Source of the DNA: Parasitella parasitica NRRL 2501
Taxonomy: Eukaryota > Fungi > Mucoromycota
NCBI GenBank assembly: GCA_025201805.1
Contig: MU619262.1
Span: forward strand, 197,817 to 261,816
Length of the DNA: 64,000 bases
Direction of reading: 5' to 3'
Shown here piece by piece: positions 26,184 to 39,819 of this stretch. The translations under genes were made by a program, and so were the position numbers. The stretch's first letter is position 1, and each line of letters opens with the position of its first letter. The notes below the pieces were generated by a model, which worked only from the letters and a program-made list of their open reading frames with translations, was not told where the DNA came from and did not search any database.

Positions 26184-27432
26184 TTAGGCAGTGGCAGACT
26201 TTTGCATGGAAGAAGTACGACGGCGTTCAATCTTCTGTTGCTTGGACTCCTTAACACGCTTGGCGAGCAATTGCTTGTACTCGGCTTCAGCTTCACGAGA
26301 GGCCTCGGCTCTTCTGCGCTTGAGAGCTTGTCTGTGTCTCTTACGTTGAAGAGTAAGAGGGGTGACGAGACGTTGGATCTTGGGGGCCTTGGTGTAAGCC
26401 TTCTTACCCTCAGCCTTGGGTTGAACCTCACGACGAATGACATACTTACGGACATCATCTTCCTTGGTCAAGTTCTATAAAATGCAAACAGGGCCAACCA
26501 ACTATCAGTACCAAATGCTAACTTTAGAGATCAAACCCACTTACAAAGAACTTTCTGATCTTGGAAGCACGCTTAGGACCGAGACGCTTGGGGACGGTAG
26601 TATCGGTCAAACCGGGGATCTCTTGCTCGCCTTGCTTAACAACGACGAGAGACAAGACAGAGAGGTCAGAACCGACGATACAACCACGGACAGACTTTCT
26701 CTTGCGCTCACCGGTGCGACGAGGGCGGTAGCAAGAGTGGCCCTTGGACATCAAAAGGCGAACACGATGGGGCAAGAGAACACCTTGCTTCATGGGGAAA
26801 CCTTGCTTGTCGTTACCACCAGAGATACGGAAAACGTAGCCCTTGAACTCATCGCCGAGAGAGTCACCAGAGACCTCTTGGGCCATACGCTTATCGTAGA
26901 AACCACGGCTATAAATATTATAAAAAAAAACAGCCTTGTTAGTTTTTGGACACCCAAGACGACGCTGATTGTGCAAAATGCATGTGTGCAGGTGTGCAGG
27001 TGTGCAAGTGTGTAGAAATAGCTCAAGTGTTCCACTTTTATATTTGATTCGTTACTTTCCAAGCGCAATTGGTGATTTCAACATGTACATTATACTCGAC
27101 CCTCTGCAACAAAATCGACACACCTACTGCACACACATGTTCTTATTTTATCAATAATGTTTACTTACACACGACGCTCATCCTCGATTTCAATCAACTT
27201 TTGGCAGCCAGTGGCTGGGTTGGCGATGTTCAACTATAGGAAACGGCATCAGTAATAATTCAGACATATGTGAAAACAACCCGCATCATCGTCCAAACAC
27301 ACACAAATTTCAAAGGAAAGGTGGATCAATCCGTCTATTGGATCATCCATCTAGCGCTTTTATATGTTGATGCAGCGTTTGATTTGTGTATGTGCATGGA
27401 TGGCGTTTGGTTGACAGTGCACACACCTTCAT
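26184..27432 (-). CDS. RPS6: 40S ribosomal protein eS6 (4 exons)
   Basis: MK|[39 protein letters not shown] and C-terminal RRRTSS. Introns 27234-27426, 26909-27168 and 26475-26544. Confidence 0.98.
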
Positions 27433-27692
27433 GACTCGTCAAATAGGGAAAGACAGTTCATCAATAGCGATTGCTTGCACATTTTATCGCGAATCCAATG
27501 CTTGCAGAATAAGGCTGGACGCGGCTCGGTTCGAACACTTTGGTGTGTCACAGGTAAAGTCCTGGTGGTGAACCGGGCAAATGCTGGCTGAACATGATCC
27601 CCAAAATAACACTGTGAGGGCTATTCACCAAGAGCCCCCAAAATGTCGAAAAAAGTTTTTTCCTGGTTTTGACACATTAAAGATTTGCAAAA

Positions 27693-28586
27693 ATGGCTGC
27701 TGCTGCTCAATCACCTGAAGTTTATGAAATCAGCAAGACTATCGACTACAGTGTCAAGCACCCTCTTCAAAATATTTGGACATTGTGGTTTGATAGCCTT
27801 GAAAAGAAGGCCAACGCTCAATCTTGGGCTGACAGTCTTCAAAAAATCATTGAAATCGACACTGTTGAGGACTTTTGGTGGTAACGACTGAGCGTTCCGT
27901 TTGCGTAAAGATCACTAATCTTGCCTTTAAAAGCGCTTTCAATAACGTAGCCAAGATTAACCATCTTCCTCCCAATTCCAATTACCACCTTTTCAAGCAG
28001 GGTATTCGTCCTGAATGGGAAGATGAGGCCAATGCTAAGGGTGGCAAGTTTTGTATCAAGCTCCCCAAGAATAAGACAGGTGATGCCATCAACAACTACT
28101 GGATGTACCTTGTAAGTGCATCTGTTTGAATTTGATTCCATACACGGCTTGTTCTTACATATGAATTATGCACTCTAGCTTTTGGCCGTCATCGGCGAGC
28201 AATTAGCTACAGAACATGAGGTCTGTGGTGCTGTCATCTCTGTCCGCAAGACTCTTAATAAAATCGCCTTGTGGGTAAAGACTTGTGATGATGAAAAAAA
28301 GATTGAAGAGATCAGGTAAGCAAAGACCGAGTGTGCCCTCCACCTTCTCCTCCTCCCCTCTCTCTAACAATGTTCAATATCTAGCAACCAGCTTCGAGCG
28401 ACTCTCAAACTTTCTGAAGATATCCCTATCGAATTCATTGCTCACGACGAATCGCCTGCAAAGATCGCTGCTGCTTTAGCAGCTGCTTCTCTTGAGGAGA
28501 ATGCTGCCGATGATGTTACGAACGAAGCTAGCACTGATGTGGCTGCTCCATCCACCAAAGCTGATCCTGCAGAGACGGTAGCTTAA
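27693..28586 (+). CDS. EIF4E: Cap-binding translation initiation factor eIF4E (4 exons)
   Basis: KHPLQNIWTLWFD, TVEDFW, YHLFKQGIRPEWED..NAKGG and CGAVISVRK..KIALW. Confidence 0.96.
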
Positions 28587-29002
28587 GTCTTTTTTTCGTT
28601 GAACGTAGTTGAAATAAATGTCCAAATCGCTTTGTTAGTGCGGTGTTGACAAAAGTTGTCTGATGATGAGCTTTTTTTTTTTTTTTTTTGGCCCATCATT
28701 TTATAATCATCACTACCATTTATAAGAGACGGGTAGCTGTCTTGCTCGTATTTTCCAACTGATTCGCTGCAAGGTATTCTATTTGAGGTGAGAATGTGGA
28801 AGCATATCAGTTTCTCAATTGATAAATGTGCTTTCTGCTATAAACAAAGCTTCGCTGTAATAATATGTTGGCATTCAAAGGCCATTCGAAATATTTGAAT
28901 TGAATTCCAACAAGCGCCGAACCGTCAAAATAATGGGCGGGCCACACCAATTGAAATAGGGAGAGGTAAGAAAAAGAGGTCAATGTAGCATCCGTCAAAG
29001 TA

Positions 29003-29015
29003 CTTTCTCTTTTCC
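29003..29015 (+). promoter_or_regulatory. Oligopyrimidine (TOP/TCT-like) tract at the probable RPS7 start site
   Basis: CTTTCTCTTTTCC lies just before the 5' UTR intron donor at 29028. The TSS itself is not known. Confidence 0.35.
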
Positions 29016-29189
29016 GGGTCCTAAAACGTACGTAGATGACTATGGGTCAGGTGTATCATATAGATAGAGAGGAATATGTACATCGTAGAGATGGATGATA
29101 GAATGAATGGATGGATCGATACATCTTTTCGCTCAAGATGAACTGACAGTTTTTTTTTTTGTTGATATCACAGTATATACAAGACGATC

Positions 29190-29928
29190 ATGGCTTCGAA
29201 CAAAATCCAAAAGGCCAACGGTGCCGCTCCTGCTGACGAAACTGAACTCGCTGTTGCCCAAGCTCTTGTCGACTTGGAATCCAGTGTTCCTGAGCTCCGT
29301 GCTCTTTCTATTTCTAGTGCCAAGGAGGTAAACATCTTGTCATGATGTAAACCAGACAAATTGAAACTGATTTCCTACTAGGTCGAACTCGGTTCTGGTA
29401 AGAAAGCTCTTGTTATCTTTGTTCCCGTCCCTATGCTCAAGAGCTTCAACAAGATTCAACAAAAGTAAGTCTTGTGTGTCTTATAAATTAATTGAGCGGC
29501 ATATTGAAGGTATATTAGGCTCACTCGTGAACTCGAAAAGAAGTTTTCTGATTGTCATGTTGTCTTTGTTGCCCAACGTCGTATTTTGGCTATTCCAGGT
29601 CGTCGTAGCAACAACAAACAACCCCGCCCCAGATCTCGTACTTTGACCGCCGTTCATGACGCTATTTTGGATGATTTGGTTTACCCTACTGAAATTGTTG
29701 GTAAGAGACTCCGTCAAAAGGTTGATGGTTCCAAAACTCTCAAGGTGTAAGTAGATGTTTTTGACGTAGAGTGGGATTTTTCCTGACATTTCTCATGTTT
29801 ATAGGTTCCTTGATACTAAGGACGCCACCTCTCTCGAGTACAAGCTCGATACCTTCTCTGCTGTCTACAAGAAGCTCACTGGCAAGGACGTTGCCTTTGA
29901 GTTCCCTGCTAATGCTGATCTCTTCTAA
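29190..29928 (+). CDS. RPS7: 40S ribosomal protein eS7 (4 coding exons plus a probable 5' UTR intron at 29028-29173)
   Basis: [53 protein letters not shown] and [14 protein letters not shown]. Confidence 0.97.
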
Positions 29929-29988
29929 ATTAGATAGATATACAATCAATCTTTTTTTTTTTCTTTTTTTTTTGCTCAAGTAAAAAGG

Positions 29989-30005
29989 NNNNNNNNNNNN
30001 NNNNN
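29989..30005. other. Assembly gap (N run)
   Basis: N bases. Confidence 1.
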
Positions 30006-30547
30006 AAAAAAAAAAAAAAAAAGAGAAAGAGATAAAATGATAGGGTTGGGGTGTAAGGGTTAGGTTTAGGGTTTATATAATGCCTGAAAGAGTAAATAGG
30101 GAGGAAAGTGGGAGATAAAGAAAGTTTATAACATAATCATTGTTATACAATCGATGGATTCGTACGCTGTGTAAATAACGTTAGTTGGGCAATTGTGACC
30201 AAAACAAAAATGCGTATTTTAGATGTATAAAAATGCAAGGGGAGCAAGGGCTGTATTTTATCATATCAGAAATCAAAGGAGTATTGTGCCGTGCATATTT
30301 GATTTCAAAAATAATACAGTGCATGTTTGATTTCAAAAGAAACAAACGATGCAGTATGATAATTTAATGTTCTGTAGAACCACATCCAATAAGGGAAACT
30401 CGTCTCATGCAGCGTGTTACAGAACACTTGCTTTTTAGCGTCTCCTTTCATTGTATGTGTTTATTTCTTTCTTTCTTTCTTTCTTTTTTTCTTTTATCAA
30501 GATTTCTTTTTCCTTATCCTTCAGAAAAGTAATCTTAGCAATAACCA

Positions 30548-31276
30548 ATGTCAAAAGCATCATTTCTTAGAGAGTAAGGATTCTTTTTGCGAACGTTCAT
30601 AACACTGTGTCTGAGTTTTTCATAATTTCAGGTACAAAATCGTTATTGTAGGCGGTGGTGGTGTTGGTAAATCTGCCTTGACTATCCAATTCATCCAAGC
30701 GCACTTTGTTGATGAATATGATCCAACAATCGAAGGTATGTGGCTATTATACGAATGTGACATGCGCAAGCTGCTAATATAAGAGTAGATTCTTACCGTA
30801 AACAGTGCGTTATTGACGAGGAAACTGCTTTGTTGGACGTTTTAGATACTGCAGGCCAAGAGGAGTACAGTGCCATGAGAGAACAGTATATGAGAAATGG
30901 CGAAGGCTTTGTTTTGGTCTATTCAATCACATCTCGCCTCTCTTTTGAAGAAGTGAATACATTTTATCAACAAATTAAACGTGTTAAAGATCGTGATTCC
31001 TTCCCTATGGTGTTGGTGGGCAACAAGTGCGATTTAGAAGGTGATCGACAAGTGTCCAGCCAAGAAGGCAACGATTTAGCCAAAAGTTTTGGGTGTCCTT
31101 TCAAGGAAACTTCTGCAAAGCAACGCATCCAAGTTGACGATACTTTTTACGAGGTTGTACGAGAGATTCGTCGTATTAATAAGGAACAAGAAGGTAGATC
31201 AAAAGGCGGCCAAAGAGAAGCTTTTGAAATGTCAGAGAATCGTAATGATGGCTGTTGTGGTTGTATTTTGATGTAA
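30548..31276 (+). CDS. RAS1: Ras GTPase (3 exons)
   Basis: MSKASFLRE|[39 protein letters not shown] and C-terminal CCGCILM (CaaX). Confidence 0.97.
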
Positions 31277-31601
31277 CTTTATATTTCTTTTTCTTTTTCT
31301 TTATACATATATATATCTTTTACTACTACTATTACCTTTTTTTTTTTTTTCTTTTTTATTTATACTTCCAACTATTACTCTTATTAACCCTCGCAAATTA
31401 ATATACTTTGTTGTATGGTATAATGTTATAGCAATGTGCTCCATCTATTTCTTCCTCCCTTTTTCTTCTCTTCCCCTCTCCCTTCTTGCCTCTCCCTAGT
31501 CAACTCCTAAAAAACCACACAAAAACCAAACAGAAAAGAAATCAGAATTGACAACAACATTTCCTCTTTGTGACAAGAGAAATAAACACGATTTTCATTT
31601 A

Positions 31602-33626
31602 CTATTCCAATGGTCTGTGTCTGATGCTGTTGCGAGGGACAGAGTCAAAAATAGTTTCAGCTTCATCTGTAACTGCATTTGCGGTTAAAATGTGAGGAGG
31701 GATCATCGATCCAGCTTCATCCTGGTCGTTCTCGTCTTGTGCCAGTTCTAGTTCAATCTTGTTCTTATTACTGCTTGAATGCTGGGGATTATCATTCATC
31801 GTCGTATAGTGAGGGGAAAGAGCAATTTCCATGCTTGATTTCTTTGGATTGTCTCATGGCGGAAATTTTAGAGATGCCCTTCGGTCTGCTTCTGCATAAT
31901 CGAATCCTACAAAACAGGGTTTTCGGTCGCTGGCTACAGAATTAGAAGGCGAGGGATGCTTCTGCACAGACGATTGCATATTTTCCATTTTACTTCGAAC
32001 GGAGAAAGCAGTATCCTTCAAAGTGATAGGAACAGGCGTTGCCAAGCTACGATCTACAGTACATATTTAGGGCCCTATAGGCTGATCAAGTTGTGCCTTA
32101 TTCTACATACCTTGTTTTTGGTGATACGCGTTTGTCTTTGTGGACTTGTCGTCCTTTTCTTCTTCAAAGTCAATGCATTTGCGTGAAGGCCTTCTTTTGT
32201 TTCGTGGTGTGTTGGATCGCCATCTATCCGGTGCAGCGCTTTGGGAATCTCCCAGCGCTTGAATGTCTTCATCTAATGGAAAAAAGTCCTCTTTGCTATC
32301 ATCATCGCCTTCCCACGACGAGGAGGTGTTGGAGCAGGTAGTTGCATCAGCAGCGGTGTTTGGCTGTGCAAGAGGATATAAATGATGACGATGCTGACAA
32401 AGAGGAGCTAAAGGAGGATGTTTACGTTGAAACGGAGACGCCTCGGTTGCAGGATTGAATTGACGAGCCTTCTTGAGGCTGCTTTCGTCTAAAACATACC
32501 TGGATCTTCTGCTGGTACGAGATGGAGCAACAAAACCACCCAATAATCCTCTTTTAAAAGCTGAATATCGCCTCCTTGCTCTGTTTCTGATTCAAGCAAA
32601 CAATCCTGCGAGAATGCACATACGATTCGCCTTTCTGCATCTCTATCTCAGCAGAGTCGAAATCGGTATCACGAATGGTTTGGCGATGATGCGATTAAAT
32701 AAAATTTGATCGGTGACACCGTTCGTTGTCTTTTGGTAGGTCAGTCAACGTACTCGTTATAATCTCTTTGATTCCTGGTCATAGAATGGCACAGTCGTAA
32801 GTAGCCCTTTCTCTTTCTCTTTCTGTTTCTGTTTCATTTTCTCTTTCTGTTTTCGGTAGGCTTTCTTGCTCTTTTCGAAATTCTTGGATTTTCTTTTTAG
32901 TGGTTGTCTCTAGATCGACGAGAGATTGCTTTAGCAATTGCTACACTTGACCATGTTGAGTTTTTACCTCAGGGCTGCGTGTGCTTTGTTTAAATTTCAA
33001 GTTGATTTGCATTACCAGATGTTATGTATTATACTCGTAATCATCTTCATCTTCATTTTCTGCTGCATGATTCAATAGTGGGTAAATCTGGATTCAAAAT
33101 GATGTGAAATGTGCTCGAGTAGGCAGCTTTCTTCTGCAGTTCTTTTATGTCATTGCCAAACTTGATGAGAAGCGTGTGAGCAGCAATGCGTTGATCATCA
33201 TGTAATTTTAGTACTTACGAGAGCGCGCCTTTATAAACAATAACTTGATCTCCAAACTTGCCCAGGATGGAATTATCAAACGGGTAGGTAAATATAGTAT
33301 TATACCGTTTAACCTAGTAAATATCTCCAGAGGTGTAATTATGACAGCGAACAGTTATCAAGCCTTGGGGGGGGGGGTTATCCATAATAATTCTGACACG
33401 AATTAAACTTGCATATTCCTACCTGCAGATCCCATGTGCATTTGTAATACATACCACTGTAACGCCTCCCATACTCAAGTCAAATTTCAGTCAAGTAATT
33501 GGTGACGCTTTTAAATGAGTAAACATGTAATTTCTAGATTTCTCATGACCTTCTAGATAGTATTTATTGGTCAAATGGAATTTTGACATTGAGGCAGTTA
33601 CAAGTGTATGTAATGCGGGCTGTCAT
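31602..33626 (-). pseudogene. Disrupted gene with PRAS40/AKT1S1-like motif architecture
   Basis: ATG at 33626 (MTARITYTCNCLNVKI), two GT-AG intron remnants, several frameshifts, and in-frame stops (e.g. 33491, 33314, 32103, 32067, 31854). The three 3' ORF pieces share one frame and give FFPLDED..LATPVPITL..MIPPHIL..ETIFDSVPR. Confidence 0.75.
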
Positions 33627-34278
33627 TGCTCTATTGTTGGTGATAATGTAAAGAATGAAGGATTGTCTCTTTGAGAGTATCCAGAAAATGACCTGGATAG
33701 ACATTTGTTTCAACATGGTCATGTAATAATCGTGCCATACGAGGCAAACCACTTGTATAAAAATATCAAGCAACGTCGTTTAATAATATAGTGGCTATAC
33801 ATGTTCTGTGATTTGAAATCTCAGCAGGGTGAAATTCTCAAAAGTTGCATAAAAGGCAAGGAAATGCTGTGATTTCTCCCAATGCGTCAAAATGTTCATC
33901 AGAACAGTCAGTATTCACAAAGCTGTCCACCCGAACATATATTAATGATATGAATATGCCTATCGGCTTTTGTATGACCGACTGTCGTTGCCTGTACGGA
34001 AATAGGGGCTTTCCTAGCAACATATGACTATTAGATAACGTCTTCACATTGCTCAAAGCAACCATTAACAGGATTCAAGGCATAGCATCATCACCATCAT
34101 CACGGAAGCATTGAATCGCCGAATGAGTCGAAATTGGGGATGGGTGCACACACATATTAAGCACTTTTCAGTGAGCCAAGCTCTCTAGTTAATTTCCACG
34201 TTTGTTTCTTTTTTTTTTTTTTTTTTTTTTTTTAAATCTATATTACCTTTCTTCAGCATAATAACAAGGAAATAAAAA

Positions 34279-35871
34279 ATGACAAATCTGCCTGTTGTAG
34301 TTATGGATAACGGTACTGGGTAAGACGACTAAACCCAATCTACATAACCATGCAAGACGCGTTATTGAAACACACATTTTAGGTACACTAAGCTCGGTTT
34401 TAGTGGCAACAATGAGCCTTCCTTTGTTTTTCCAACTGCTATTTCCACTCGTGAATCGCCTTCAAGCACAGGAAGACCTGGCATCCCCAGTAAGCCTTCC
34501 TTTTTGAGCAACAATTTGGCTTCGAAACGTGGTATTGAAGACCTCGACTTTTATATTGGAGACGAGGCTCTTGCCCAATCCAAGACAATGGCCTTGAACT
34601 ATCCCATCCGTCATGGCCAAATCAACAATTGGGATCATATGGAAAGATTTTGGGAACAGTCCATCTTTAAATACTTGCGTTGCGAGCCTGAAGATCACTA
34701 CTTTCTTATGGTAAAGCCAAAGAATGTTTATAATACCTTGCATACTCATGACATTTAGACCGAACCTCCTATGAATACTCCCGAAAATCGTGAAATGACA
34801 GCAGAGATTATGTTTGAATCATTCAATGTTCAAGGTCTTTATATCGCTGTTCAAGCTGTGTTGGCTTTGGCTGCATCTTGGACCTCAAGTAAAGTGAGCG
34901 AACAAACATTGACTGGCACAGTTGTCGATTCTGGTGATGGTGTCACTCATGTTATTCCTGTCGTAAGTAGCTTTGTGGGGTATATTGATTCTAGAGGGGG
35001 GGGGGGAGAGGTGACAGACTTATTAATATGACCTTGTAGGCCGAAGGCTATGTGATTGCAAGTTCTATCAAGAGTGTGCCTATTGCCGGCAGTGATATTA
35101 CTTCCTTTGTTCAAAACTTACTGCGTGAACGTGGGGAAACAAACATCCCTCCTGAGGACTCTTTGCGCATTGCTCAAGCTATCAAGGAAGATTACAGTTA
35201 TGTTTGCCCTGACATCGTCAAAGAGTTCAAAAAATACGACCAAGAGCCTTCGAAATATTTCAAAAAGTATGATGGTATCTATTCCTCAACGGGCAAGGTA
35301 AAAAAAAAAGAATTTGAAAAGTTGAGCGTAAAAGCAATGCATCTAACCAAAGAAATAGAGTTATTCCGTTGATATTGGTTTTGAGCGTTTTCTTGCACCA
35401 GAAATCTTCTTTAATCCAGAAATTGCGAGTTCAGATTTTTTAACACCTTTACCAGAAATCGTTGACACAGTCATTCAAACCAGCCCTATTGATGTTCGTA
35501 GAGGATTATATAAAAACATTGTACTATCTGGTGGCTCTACCATGTTTAAAGGGTTCGACAAGAGACTGCAACGTGATATAAAGCGTACTGTTGATAGACG
35601 CATTGAAGCGAGCGAAGTTACCAGCGGTTCAGATATGAAAGCTAAGCCTATGGAGGTCAATGTTATCTCCCACAAGAAACAAAGACATGCTGTTTGGTTT
35701 GGCGGCAGTCTGTTGGCTTCTACTGTAAGTCGATCAATTTGCAATTGTACATGATACTCACACAATGTTACATAGGGTGAATTTTACAACTCTTGTCATA
35801 CAAAGGCTGAATACGACGAATATGGTCCTAGCATATGCCGTCATAACAGAGTCTTTAACTCACTTTTGTAA
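34279..35871 (+). CDS. ARP3: Actin-related protein 3, Arp2/3 complex (6 exons)
   Basis: VVMDNGTG|[38 protein letters not shown] and [13 protein letters not shown]. Confidence 0.98.
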
Positions 35872-38800
35872 TACACAAGTAAATAAACCTTTTTATTACT
35901 TAATACATTTCGATTTATGCCTTTTCCTTCTTGGCTACTTCATTTGCGTGAGCTTTTTTATTTTTATTTATAAGTTTGCCAGAGGTTGGTGCCAGATAAA
36001 AATAAAAAACTAAAAGGCACAGCAGAAAGAGAGAGATGTTTGAAGTTTTGATTTTAAGTATGTGAAAACGCTATTAAACATTATAGATTTGCTTTATAAA
36101 AGGAACTAATGGCAAAAAGATCCATTTTGACAAAATCAATCTCAAAAAGTTTTATATTTGAAGTCTATTAACCAGGAACTGCGGACATGTCGACATGAAA
36201 ATAAAATGCCTGGCAATAATCTGATAGTCAAGAAGCAGAAAAACGTGATAAGTACAGCATCACTTTTATATACTTTGATTCCAGGCAACTATGGCTTTCT
36301 AAAGCTGTCCAAAAACATATCGGAAATAGTATTTCCGCGCTTTGTGGGGAACAATTTTGCATGAAGGCCTCATTTTTCGACGGTTTGACACAATAAAATG
36401 TTTTTCCTAAAATACTTCACACATTTATTATGTAAAGCCTTCCTACTATGTTAAGGCATCAAGTGTATTTTTGAATACTATACATGCTGGCGCATTTATG
36501 TTGCTTCAAGTGATGTAAAATTCAAAAAAACTGCCTAATAAAAGCTTGATTTATTGCATTCAGGTAAAAGAGATAACTCTATAAAATCAAATATCTGTAG
36601 CTCATTTGAATTTTGTTTTATTTATAACAAAGTAAAATATAGTTTATTCAAATCATTAATATAATAACTTTATCTTGATTAAATTAAACTTTATAGGAAA
36701 ACAGCAGTAAGCATTGCTCGATTAATTGAGGTGGGGTATCAGGCTGTATCTACAGAATACCATGGTTACCACTACTATTCAACTTAATTGCCATGGCAAC
36801 CGTTCCTGACCGGATTTAAGGTTAAATGTCATCGATTATTCTATATAGTAAATAGAAGTAATTTTGTATAAATAAACATCTATAATTTAGGTTCTACTGA
36901 TTCCAAATTGTGAAGCTTAACCTATCGATGAACGCTTTAAATACATATATAGCAATGAATAGCAAATTAATAGATATACAGATAGGGCTTAATCGGACTA
37001 CTACTGTGTTATCAACTTGTTTTGCAATTGAATGTCGACATAATCTGATTGTATTCATAGATTGATACATGTATTAATATAAATACACAGCTGCTCATCT
37101 CAATCAATAATATCAACGGTTTCATATCGGATAAATTAATATTCTTTTTTACTTTGTTCTTATATCTTTTATCTTATAAAATTCCTGCTGTGTTCACTTT
37201 CAAAGAGACCTGGGGCAACAGAACTCCTAATCTACTTATTGGTTTTCTAAACCGTTATGATGTGACAAACGGTATGTAAAAGGATGGCGAAATTAACCAA
37301 GCTTTAAAAAACAAAAAAAAAAAAACGAATTTAAACACAGAGTATATCACGTGGTTTTTATTTCAAACTCCGGCACGAAAAACGCGATAGTATTTTTGCA
37401 GATAACTTTTGATAGAGACATTGCCCAGTGGAAATCAAGTTATGCTCAGATAGCGATGATTATGCCTATTTTTATGAAGCATAAAACAGGGTTTATGTTG
37501 CTCTTTATAGTAGCCTATCAGCGTTTATATACGATTTTGGGATGGTTTCTGCAGATAACTTTCTAGATTTCAATAAAAGCATCATACAAATGTTTTCGCC
37601 AGATAGCGCCAAGTCAACACTAAGTTTTCCAAGTTAGATCTCGATTCTACGGTCATTTTAGCACAAGTTATGAGCAAATATCTGATATTTATGATAAATT
37701 TTGATGGATTATTGTTAAAAGTCTACAGTAAAGGTTGTATTTTAAAAATAACTATCAAACTGCTTCTCAAACCATAGTAGCCTTGCAATAAGTGCAAGAT
37801 CAACAACAACATCAATATAACTCTCATTCAATGAGTACGTTATGTATCATTCATGGTAATCCTTTCTTTTATTTGAATACTCGAATTTACGTGTCTAAAA
37901 ATTGTAAATAGTGATTTATACTCCATAATCTTGAAGACAACAATTCTTGTACAGTTAATATTTTAACTTTTTCAACATAAATTTGATAATATCATGTAAC
38001 GGGATATCAGCTAAAGGCTTTTCAATTTAATGAAAGCTTTTGACTATAGAATCCAAAGTTTCCGCACAAAAGTCTTTCTGTAGGGGCTGCAGGATATAGA
38101 ATCACAGGCTTCCGCGCTGTGCCGAAATGACAGAACTTCCCACGAAAAGTAATTGAATGTCATCTCTTACGGAACCACCTTAAAGATTCCAGATCAAGTT
38201 AACAAACAAATTACTTGAATATCTAATTGTGAAACCACAAAGCATTTGTATAATCAATTAAGACCAACAAAAAGAAATCGAAGCACAAACCACATTGGAA
38301 CACATAGACCAATGTGAGGACTGGTCCATGCATACCATTTACAAATGTGCCAGAAATATCGATATTAAAATACCGTACCTGATTATGTAAAATTAAATAC
38401 AGACAAACTTCAACTTGGTCCAACTGCCAGTTACGACATAACTGGCAGACAAACTGTTTGCAACAACGAATATAAATAGAGTAGAAATGTCTGGCCATTG
38501 CACGTTATTCTATTTCCAAAATAAAGAAGGAGTTAAATTGCTTCTATTATTGTTTTTAAACGTTTTACTACACACGCTAAGGCCTTTTTGTAGGGACTCG
38601 ATGATGGTGTATAGCAGGATAAATTTAAGTAGGGAAGCACTACGTGAGGACGACTTTTCAACGCTTGACAAATTGTGTTATAATGCTTGGTATACGTTTA
38701 ATTTCAAGTTTTTAGACGAGGTACTATAAGGGAAATTGTCGAAAAAGAAAAAAGTGAACAAAAAAGCGAGTTAATGGTATAGAAAGTATTTCTTTATTTG

Positions 38801-39819
38801 CAAATGTTGATTTCTACTTGAGTAGAGACTAAAAAAACAACTATAACACGAGAAATAGCTCATAAAAACATGGGTTTAGCATTTTCCTTAAATTTTTATA
38901 TATTCCATCATTGAATCTTACTCTCATTGTTTGCTGCACAGAGAAAGTAATAAAAGTACGAATATGCGAATTTGAAAGCGGCTATAGGTAGTGGTTCACT
39001 ATTTTATTTTGTGCATTTTTGTATTGCCATTTGTTGTACATAATGATTTTGATTTTACCAAGTATCAAGGACGATGCAGCAAAATCTCTCTCTGGCAATA
39101 AAATAATTCAAATGGTTGTTTAGCGTATGTCTAGATTATGTTCATCAGATAGCGCTGTATAAAAATGGCCACCGAGTTTTACTTTCGTGCATAAATTGTC
39201 GGATGGATCATCATCCGAAAATTATGACACAATCCCATGCAGGAATTTGCAATCCCATTTTTTTTTATTTGAATACAATATGTATGGCGCACACAGTAAA
39301 AGTGACCATAATGTGATCTATTTATTTCATTCATCCTAACCTTATTGTAAACACTTGATGAAAAGAGGAAAAAAAATTAGTGTGAGGTCATTTTAACTTT
39401 GTAATTTCCTGCAGATATTTCCCAAAAATAGGTTATAACATCCCAGAGGCGCATGTTCCAAGTTAATTTTGACGGCTCACAAAGTTTGGTCCTTGTAAGC
39501 TTGATCTGTTTCAATACCAATCAGGATTATTGGGTGATATGAAATAGGATGAGAAAGGTTCGGATATTTTTTTGGATGAAGCCAGATGGTATTGATTCAA
39601 ATCACTTGTTTATCATAAAGTATTATCATTTTTCTTTAGCTTAAAGAAGTCTAACTTGTGTAATAACGTCACATATTGAGATTCCCAAATCTATAGAAAA
39701 GAAGAAGGTGGGAAAACTTCTACGCTTCTTTTCTTCCTCTTAATTTTCTTTTTCTTTTCTCTCTTATTTTTTTTTTTCTTGCAAATAAACAAATATATGC
39801 GATTTGAATAAATATAAAT

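Follow-up and report, generated by a model that had tools for sequence, protein, structure and literature searches.

PRAS40 (AKT1S1) binds Raptor through a TOR signaling (TOS) motif, and the Raptor pocket favors acidic flanks around it (PMC6325617). An amphipathic helix of PRAS40 (212-232) binds the FKBP12-rapamycin binding (FRB) domain, and a beta-strand binds mLST8 (PMC6325617, PMC7464330). By phylogenetic profiling, PRAS40 is animal-specific (PMC3236823). Non-Dikarya fungi have kept sestrin, CASTOR, and KICSTOR, which are animal-type regulators of TOR complex 1 (TORC1); PRAS40 was among the components searched in the same work, which gives no report of a fungal PRAS40 and has a supplement that is silent on it (PMC11836306). 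Here we analyze a stretch of 64,000 nucleotides, the window, from the assembly of Parasitella parasitica NRRL 2501 (GCA_025201805.1, contig MU619262.1, positions 197,817 to 261,816). A first-pass annotation, made from the letters and open reading frames of the window, had placed at 31602-33626 the pseudogene of an apparent fungal PRAS40-like TORC1 regulator.

The other relevant comparison is with unitary pseudogenes. The locus has their features: synteny and intron positions are kept, disabling lesions are many, constraint is relaxed, and the genome has no functional copy of the same group. It differs only in that an annotation pipeline made a protein model from the wreck. We conclude, with a probability of about 0.92, that 31602-33626 is an unprocessed, syntenic unitary pseudogene without present function, and that its ancestor encoded a protein of ~620 amino acids belonging to an uncharacterized family restricted to Mucoromycota.

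Intact orthologs and conserved synteny

The intact 638 amino acid protein P0018 of Mucor fragilis aligns by tblastn over its residues 1-638, colinearly, with window positions 33626..31605 on the minus strand. The match has five frame switches (frame order 2, 0, 1, 2, 1, 2) and reads through in-frame stops. A broken gene of ~600 codons had been proposed at these positions, and the proposal is borne out by this match, by the same start and stop, and by lesions relative to an intact ortholog. All of the peptide strings quoted at the time are found in the window, in the stated order of the gene parts. The extent of the gene is as follows.

31602..33626, minus strand: whole gene, read as a unitary pseudogene; tblastn match colinear with P0018 1-638, and DNA alignment with L008:6001-8077 at 78% identity
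33626-33624, minus strand: ancestral ATG, the gene start, at the coordinate given by the first-pass annotation
31604-31602, minus strand: ancestral stop TAG, the gene end, likewise at the coordinate given before

A phmmer search against 1.84 billion representative proteins, using as query the deposited protein model of this locus (P0001, discussed below), returned 16 hits, and all hits with a named source are from Mucorales. Intact Mucorales homologs of the pseudogene are 560-640 amino acids long; the full-length ones include P0018 from Mucor fragilis, P0036 from M. hiemalis (588 amino acids), and P0016 from Radiomyces spectabilis (561 amino acids). Four introns interrupt the gene of Mucor fragilis (L003:4001-6126), following residues 57 (phase 0), 121 (phase 0), 157 (phase 1), and 474 (phase 1). 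A second assembly labelled Parasitella parasitica (GCA_000938895.1) contains an intact ortholog, P0041 (L008:6001-8077), with the identical four introns, so that positions and phases agree between both intact orthologs. The window retains introns 1, 2, and 4 clearly, and intron 3 is blurred.

The P0041 model includes a fifth intron (L008:7650-7706), which is 57 nucleotides of in-frame, stop-free sequence homologous to Mucor coding sequence. It is therefore coding sequence, and the protein is probably 617 rather than 598 amino acids long. Read with four introns, the gene has 617 codons and zero internal stops. The comparisons below use a MAFFT alignment of this L008 gene with the window copy (the 78% DNA identity given above).

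The two assemblies labelled Parasitella parasitica have only 75-87% DNA identity over window positions 26414-35887 (against L008, LN719426.1). It is improbable that both come from one species or strain, so one of the labels may be wrong.

Mucor fragilis (L003), GCA_000938895.1 (L008), and the window share one gene order: actin-related protein (Arp), family gene, Ras, RPS7e, eIF4E. We found no second copy in the 32.8-Mb assembly, which may be incomplete, in six-frame searches with two exons, P0041, and the L008 DNA. Conserved synteny and the lack of another copy make the locus a unitary pseudogene.

The first-pass annotation had also suggested that an intact paralog may survive elsewhere in the genome. 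The six-frame searches found no close copy and only a distant paralog on contig 150 (L011:6143-8003, minus strand, corresponding to G000:C150 ~37142-39002), whose N-domain is 36-40% identical. All of its exons read in open frames, and introns 1 and 2 match those of the family gene in position. It follows the same plan, with a CxC..CxxC N-domain, a coiled coil, EEDLFNLDEEF, LATSMPITI, and LPPHEWAAS, and it ends there, at LPPHEWAASYKE. The paralog looks intact and may cover for the lost gene.

Disabling lesions

Relative to sense codons of the ortholog, the window copy has five stops that arose by substitution (33493-91, 33316-14, 32943-41, 32781-79, and 31856-54). A sixth stop, TAA at 33024-33022, lies within a poorly aligned stretch. 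Seven exonic indels shift the frame (+1, +2, +1, -23, -16, -1, and -1), and others are in frame (+6 in an 11-C run, +30 in GAAA-rich sequence, +3, +3, -12, -3, -24, and -12). The conserved spliceosomal introns explain only four interruptions of the gene; every other one is a lesion. In the DNA alignment, the lesions are real differences relative to an intact, syntenic ortholog and not the effect of introns alone. A reading with introns only and no decay was rejected, since exons that are contiguous in the ortholog are broken in the window. A de novo splice-chain search by dynamic programming yielded implausible long-intron models only. The remnants are listed in the direction of the gene.

33455..33626, minus strand: exon 1 remnant, first half of the putative zinc N-domain with the CxC (YTCNCLNVKI, 33608-33579); +1 at ~33578 and GGA>TGA at 33493-33491
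33419..33454, minus strand: intron 1 remnant, GT..AG, phase 0, 36 nucleotides versus 54-56 in the orthologs, with 4- and 14-nucleotide deletions
33219..33418, minus strand: exon 2 remnant, second half of the N-domain, its CxxC decayed to CHNY (C83Y); in-frame +6 in poly-C at ~33377, TCA>TAG at 33316-33314, and +2 at ~33223-33219 before the donor
33161..33218, minus strand: intron 2, GTAAGT..AAG, 58 nucleotides, positioned as in the orthologs and normal in appearance
32984..33160, minus strand: exon 3 remnant (YSSTFHIIL, 33121-33095, and following) and blurred intron 3, with donor GT at 33015-33014, acceptor near 32985, and uncertain boundaries; +1 at ~33066 and TAA at 33024-33022
32111..32983, minus strand: exon 4 remnant, coiled coil, RRxS-rich linker, and TOS-like motif, with ETTTKKKIQEFRKEQE at 32910-32863; stops CAG>TAG at 32943-32941 and TGG>TGA at 32781-32779; in-frame +30 at ~32852, -23 at ~32757, -16 at ~32685, -1 at ~32615, and -1 at ~32578
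32265..32285, minus strand: FFPLDED (TOS-like F-x-L-D-E-[DE]), kept in every family member that has the region
32054..32110, minus strand: intron 4, GTATGT..TAG, 57 nucleotides, phase 1, conserved and apparently intact
31605..32053, minus strand: exon 5 remnant, with LATPVPITL, the FVGFDYAEADRRASLKFPP block, TTA>TGA at 31856-31854, and the C-terminal motif
32045-32019, minus strand: LATPVPITL, with Ser TCT>Pro CCT at 32036-32034
31913-31857, minus strand: the FVGFDYAEADRRASLKFPP block
31706-31632, minus strand: C-terminal motif MIPPHILTAN..EAETIFDSVPR (EAETIFDSVPR at 31664-31632), two invariant positions of which have changed (Pro>Ser and Gly>Asp)

Relaxed constraint

For counting, codons of the broken copy were paired with those of the ortholog, and gaps were scored as X. 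Where three Mucor species have the same residue, the broken copy has 78 private amino acid changes, versus 21 in the intact Parasitella ortholog (binomial p = 7e-9). Among other effects, the changes private to the window copy replace a putative zinc-ligand Cys by Tyr and two invariant Trp by Leu, and each of the three tail motifs is altered. In the motifs, residues that do not vary in the family are lost: the Ser of ATSVP to Pro, the Pro of GPMIPPH to Ser, and the Gly of FGS to Asp. The first of these agrees with the earlier suggestion that the Pro of ATPVP (CCT, 32036-32034) decayed from Ser TCT, as the ortholog has TCT and ATSVP is the family consensus. Over the aligned codons, amino acid identity between window and ortholog (68%) is lower than nucleotide identity (79%). 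The pairwise ratio of nonsynonymous to synonymous divergence (dN/dS) is 0.31 overall and highest in the tail (0.44).

The parent family

Alignment-based searches found family members in many Mucorales and forms of ~800 amino acids in many Mortierellomycotina. Full-length queries were database orthologs, and the window copy was searched as separate exon pieces. Every named hit of the family is hypothetical, uncharacterized, or unnamed, and none has a Pfam domain; a Pfam scan of the exon pieces and orthologs gave nothing significant. The parent family is uncharacterized, without a Pfam domain or published function.

AlphaFold2 predicts a beta-rich N-domain (residues ~5-135, with a block-mean predicted local distance difference test score, pLDDT, of mostly 70-90), a single helix of ~80 residues (163-243, pLDDT 84-98), and a tail with pLDDT <50 and a few short helices. 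We predict that the ancestral protein had a zinc-binding beta N-domain of ~135 amino acids (CxC...CxxC), a coiled coil of ~80 residues, and a disordered Ser/Arg-rich tail of ~380 residues. Four cysteines, C10, C12, C79, and C82, make up the CxC...CxxC pattern, and 90% or more of the sequences keep each of them; as a four-Cys site they would bind zinc.

For the fold of the N-domain, we compared STEEP1 and wider beta-tent zinc folds: GFA-like RSP_2168 and Gfa, Mis18/Yippee, MsrB, the thalidomide-binding domain of cereblon, and Mss4. VIA-align matches are in the weak range for RSP_2168 (3fac, Z 4.5) and Gfa (1x6m, Z 4.1), for the chains 9fmd_56 (Z 4.2, 88 residues, root mean square deviation 3.8) and 8c6j_j (Z 3.8), both confirmed as STEEP1, and for Mis18, MsrB, and cereblon (Z ~3-3.6). 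Foldseek gave E values of 0.02-0.8 against STEEP1, GFA-like, Mis18, MsrB, and cereblon chains, which is below the confidence range. When residues 1-150 were used in a language-model search, the three best-ranked clusters were those of STEEP1, with a score of 0.77 that is within the noise range. A wide structural search was swamped by the long helix. The fold matches consistently point to zinc beta-tent domains, but all scores are in the weak range and the assignment is tentative: at low confidence, the N-domain may be a beta-tent-like module that binds zinc, with STEEP1 as its closest match.

STEEP1 (CXorf56, PF25809) shares with the family the CxC ... CxxC pattern, seen also in the STEEP1 of this genome, and in both a coiled coil comes next. 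The PF25809 profile did not match any family members (orthologs, C-terminal fragments, paralog, and Mortierellomycotina), and hhalign of the family against the STEEP1 exon of this genome aligned the CxC alone. A Mis18 identity, with a Yippee-like domain and a coiled coil, is not favored; there is no PF03226 hit, the first pair is CxC and not CxxC, and Z is 3.3-3.6.

The genome has a genuine STEEP1/CXorf56 homolog elsewhere (G000:C32:40988-41430, minus strand; loci L012 and L013, with PF25809 scores of 72 and 31 bits). It matches the human spliceosome chain 8c6j_j with 39.9 bits and shares the CxC.

The tail contains conserved blocks in a fixed order: RRRSSAF.RDL.GG; RRSS..LDES; an acidic run ending in [LMV]F.[LM]DE[DE]; RR.S.KY; [FY][AG]TS[VL]PI; SFVGFDYAEADRR, in Mucorales only; and G.MIPPHI.AANT.TDETEA.FGS.PR.S.R.RP.E at the C-terminus. 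The TOS-like motif, [ED][ED][LMV]F.[LM]DE[DE], is present as a pattern match in 21/21 aligned members. It is also in the paralog and in 19/19 of the full-length Mucorales and Mortierellomycotina proteins scanned. A second motif, [FY][AG]TS[VLFM]P[IL], lies 55-110 residues downstream and is unstructured in the AlphaFold models. Near the C-terminus, short predicted helices at 608-613 and 618-624 (pLDDT ~54) precede FGSVPR in P0018.

The Mortierellomycotina versions of the motifs are VVFDLDEEL, FGTSLPIQI, and EPPHLYSAR.YVGSTPWEMP. In these proteins, the gap from PPH to [FV]GS is 7 versus 14 residues, the acidic helix is missing, and ~100 residues follow. The paralog ends directly after PPH, and the last element is absent. 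No RxRxxS/T site is found at the C-terminus (..VPRNS.R.RP.E); RRxS sites occur elsewhere in the tail. By eye we dropped readings of the motifs as an LC3-interacting region (LIR), a two-phenylalanine acidic-tract (FFAT) motif, a PxIxIT site, or an RVxF site, because the residue spacing misfits or a key residue is unconserved.

The C-terminal motif with PPH gave repeated weak matches to PF04520 (plant S40, Senescence_reg) at profile positions ~103-142, the best with E 0.063 and 14.6 bits. They were seen in L003:5944-6123, P0015, P0036/P0009, and the paralog (L011:6143-6919), and they are not independent because they come from related sequences. All are below the 22-bit cut-off, and no other region is similar to S40. 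The likeness may be a shared short motif or chance.

Comparison with PRAS40

The alternative that survives best concerns the identity of the parent family, which would be a fungal ortholog or working equivalent of PRAS40/AKT1S1 that inhibits TORC1 or is its preferred substrate. The TOS-like motif would dock to Kog1/Raptor, and ATS[VL]PI and the C-terminal helix with FGSVP would dock to Lst8 and the FRB of Tor. We consider this unlikely.

The resemblance is in the tail. Like PRAS40, the fungal proteins have a disordered, phospho-rich region with an acidic F-x-[LM]-D-E, then an aromatic-A-x-S-hydrophobic-P-hydrophobic segment, and then (in Mucorales) a helix-prone stretch and F-G-x-[VL]-P-R close to the C-terminus. 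The intact homologs conserve the TOS-like, S-x-P, and F-G-x-x-P-R motifs, which are ordered as the three PRAS40 elements quoted in the first-pass annotation and are each among the most conserved tail blocks across Mucorales and Mortierellomycotina. For the second, we assume a likeness between [FY][AG]TS[VLFM]P[IL] and the KSLP string of human PRAS40 as quoted there. Many RRxS sites fit a substrate of AGC kinases. The F-x-[LM]-D-E core is embedded in acidic sequence, as favored by the TOS pocket of Raptor (PMC6325617), and the predicted helices 608-613 and 618-624 come before FGSVPR, where PRAS40 binds FRB by a helix (PMC6325617, PMC7464330). Raptor is present in this genome, and animal-type TORC1 regulators are retained in non-Dikarya fungi (PMC11836306). 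A language-model search with the N-domain placed at rank 5 an arthropod cluster in which 25% of members have PF15798 (the PRAS family), with a score of 0.75 that is at noise level; no other search gave a hint in favor of PRAS40.

Profile evidence is against homology. PF15798 matched nothing at E<=10 in six frames of the genome; control genomes were likewise without a match, so this result is weak alone. There was also no match at E<=10 to nine orthologs, short C-terminal fragments, the paralog, or Mortierellomycotina members, in tests where the HMMER filters hide matches weaker than ~E 0.1-0.25. Two family profiles found no PRAS40 chain among the PDB sequences (whether a PRAS40 chain of at least 20 residues is present there was not checked), and PDB-sequence searches with three family alignments gave coiled-coil noise or nothing. 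A language-model search with the tail gave no usable match.

The architecture differs as well. The fungal proteins are two to three times longer, with a predicted zinc-binding N-domain and a long coiled coil, neither of which is part of PRAS40 to our knowledge. The last motif varies: the gap between PPH and [FV]GS shortens from 14 to 7 residues in Mortierellomycotina, with the acidic helix missing and ~100 extra residues, and the paralog stops right behind PPH. The Akt-type RxRxxS/T for 14-3-3 release is not at the fungal C-terminus. The motifs are short and were matched post hoc, and phylogenetic profiling makes PRAS40 animal-specific (PMC3236823).

Because there is no profile match, a zinc domain and coiled coil are added, and the last motif is variable, the proposed PRAS40-like family is a motif-level analogy at best. 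Its motif part, conservation in the order of the human strings, stood; its homology part did not. The PRAS40 label is not supported as homology, and a functional analogy survives at low probability. That F-x-L-D-E-E is a real TOS docking site for Kog1/Raptor is somewhat more probable. It is improbable that Mucoromycota have a profile-invisible PRAS40-like partner of TORC1, which would be a dimeric zinc-domain protein with a tail that docks Kog1/Raptor, Lst8, and the FRB of Tor.

The deposited protein model and assembly errors

The largest open piece of the locus, 32106-32591 on the minus strand, is 100% identical to P0001, a 279 amino acid protein deposited as hypothetical protein BD408DRAFT_442040 [Parasitella parasitica]. 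The model has the following extent.

31605..32640, minus strand: deposited model P0001, exons 32640-32624, 32550-32111, 32053-31911, and 31841-31605

Several points weigh against a dead gene. The 3' half has this deposited 279 amino acid model, and the locus may still be transcribed. Pairwise dN/dS is only 0.31, so decay has filled just part of the time since the split (by a rough estimate resting on saturated dS, about a third). The lesions were read from the assembly, and single ones may be assembly errors; a poly-C run and 1-base indels are error types typical of long-read assemblies.

The first of these points could mean that the locus is a working gene, with a 3' half that yields the 279 amino acid protein or another spliced product and a dispensable 5' half. 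A model was deposited, and one frame still encodes the TOS-like motif together with most of the C-terminal one. However, two of the three introns of P0001 (32623-32551 and 31910-31842) are matched by no intron of an ortholog, excise conserved coding sequence, and sit exactly over two frameshifts and one stop. From this pattern we read both introns as artefacts. The retained part has the Ser>Pro, Pro>Ser, and Gly>Asp changes at family-invariant positions of ATSVP, GPMIPPH, and FGS, and dN/dS is at its highest (0.44) over the tail. A working gene is very improbable.

Least credible is that errors of sequencing or assembly created the stops and frameshifts, and that the organism has an intact gene. 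In favor are the fragmentation of the assembly (450 contigs), the 1-base indels among the lesions, and one lesion that is a homopolymer run. Against it, five stops arose by base substitution, deletions of 16 and 23 nucleotides are untypical of errors, replacements are in excess at conserved sites, and Arp and Ras on the flanks give clean alignments to their orthologs, with high protein identity.

Neighboring genes and sequence context

The window is part of contig 26 of the source assembly (32.8 Mb in 450 contigs). Its composition, ~40% G+C with short GT..AG introns, is that of fungal nuclear DNA. Genes for Ras (ending in CILM), RPS7e, eIF4E, and RPS6e lie at ~26400-31300, and the Arp gene is on the other flank at 34276-35940; all are apparently intact and ordered as in Mucor. 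Between the two Parasitella assemblies, the Arp gene has a DNA identity of 85-87%, and coding-frame stretches are 93-95% identical in protein. A run of >20 A is found at ~34209-34232, in the upstream region shared by the pseudogene and the divergent Arp gene. The 11-C run in dead exon 2 (33373-33383) gives two Pro codons more than in the ortholog.

Gene loss and its implications

We propose that selection on the gene was lifted in this genome's lineage once that lineage had separated from the one of the other assembly labelled Parasitella parasitica, and that nonsense substitutions, frameshifts, and replacements of invariant residues then built up. The loss may have been tolerated because of the divergent paralog, which shares the architecture. 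The ancestral protein was most likely a dimeric scaffold, whose tail would be a multi-site substrate of AGC kinases that docks partners through short motifs. Kog1/Raptor may have been one such partner, through the TOS-like motif.

The locus itself is a case of ordinary gene loss. Its practical value is an annotation correction, as the deposited 279 amino acid "protein" is a patched-up wreck. The natural knockout here and the intact ortholog in a sister lineage offer a ready comparison. Of more interest is the parent family, which occurs throughout Mucorales and Mortierellomycotina and has a deeply conserved TOS-type motif, in a fungal group now known to retain animal-type TORC1 regulators. If the PRAS40 analogy were true, the PRAS40 type of TORC1 brake or preferred substrate would be older than animals or a product of convergence, and the Parasitella-like lineage would have lost one of two copies of a PRAS40-like partner. 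If the family binds Kog1/Raptor, it would be the first TOS-dependent client or inhibitor of TORC1 in early-diverging fungi and would give a handle on growth control in agents of mucormycosis.

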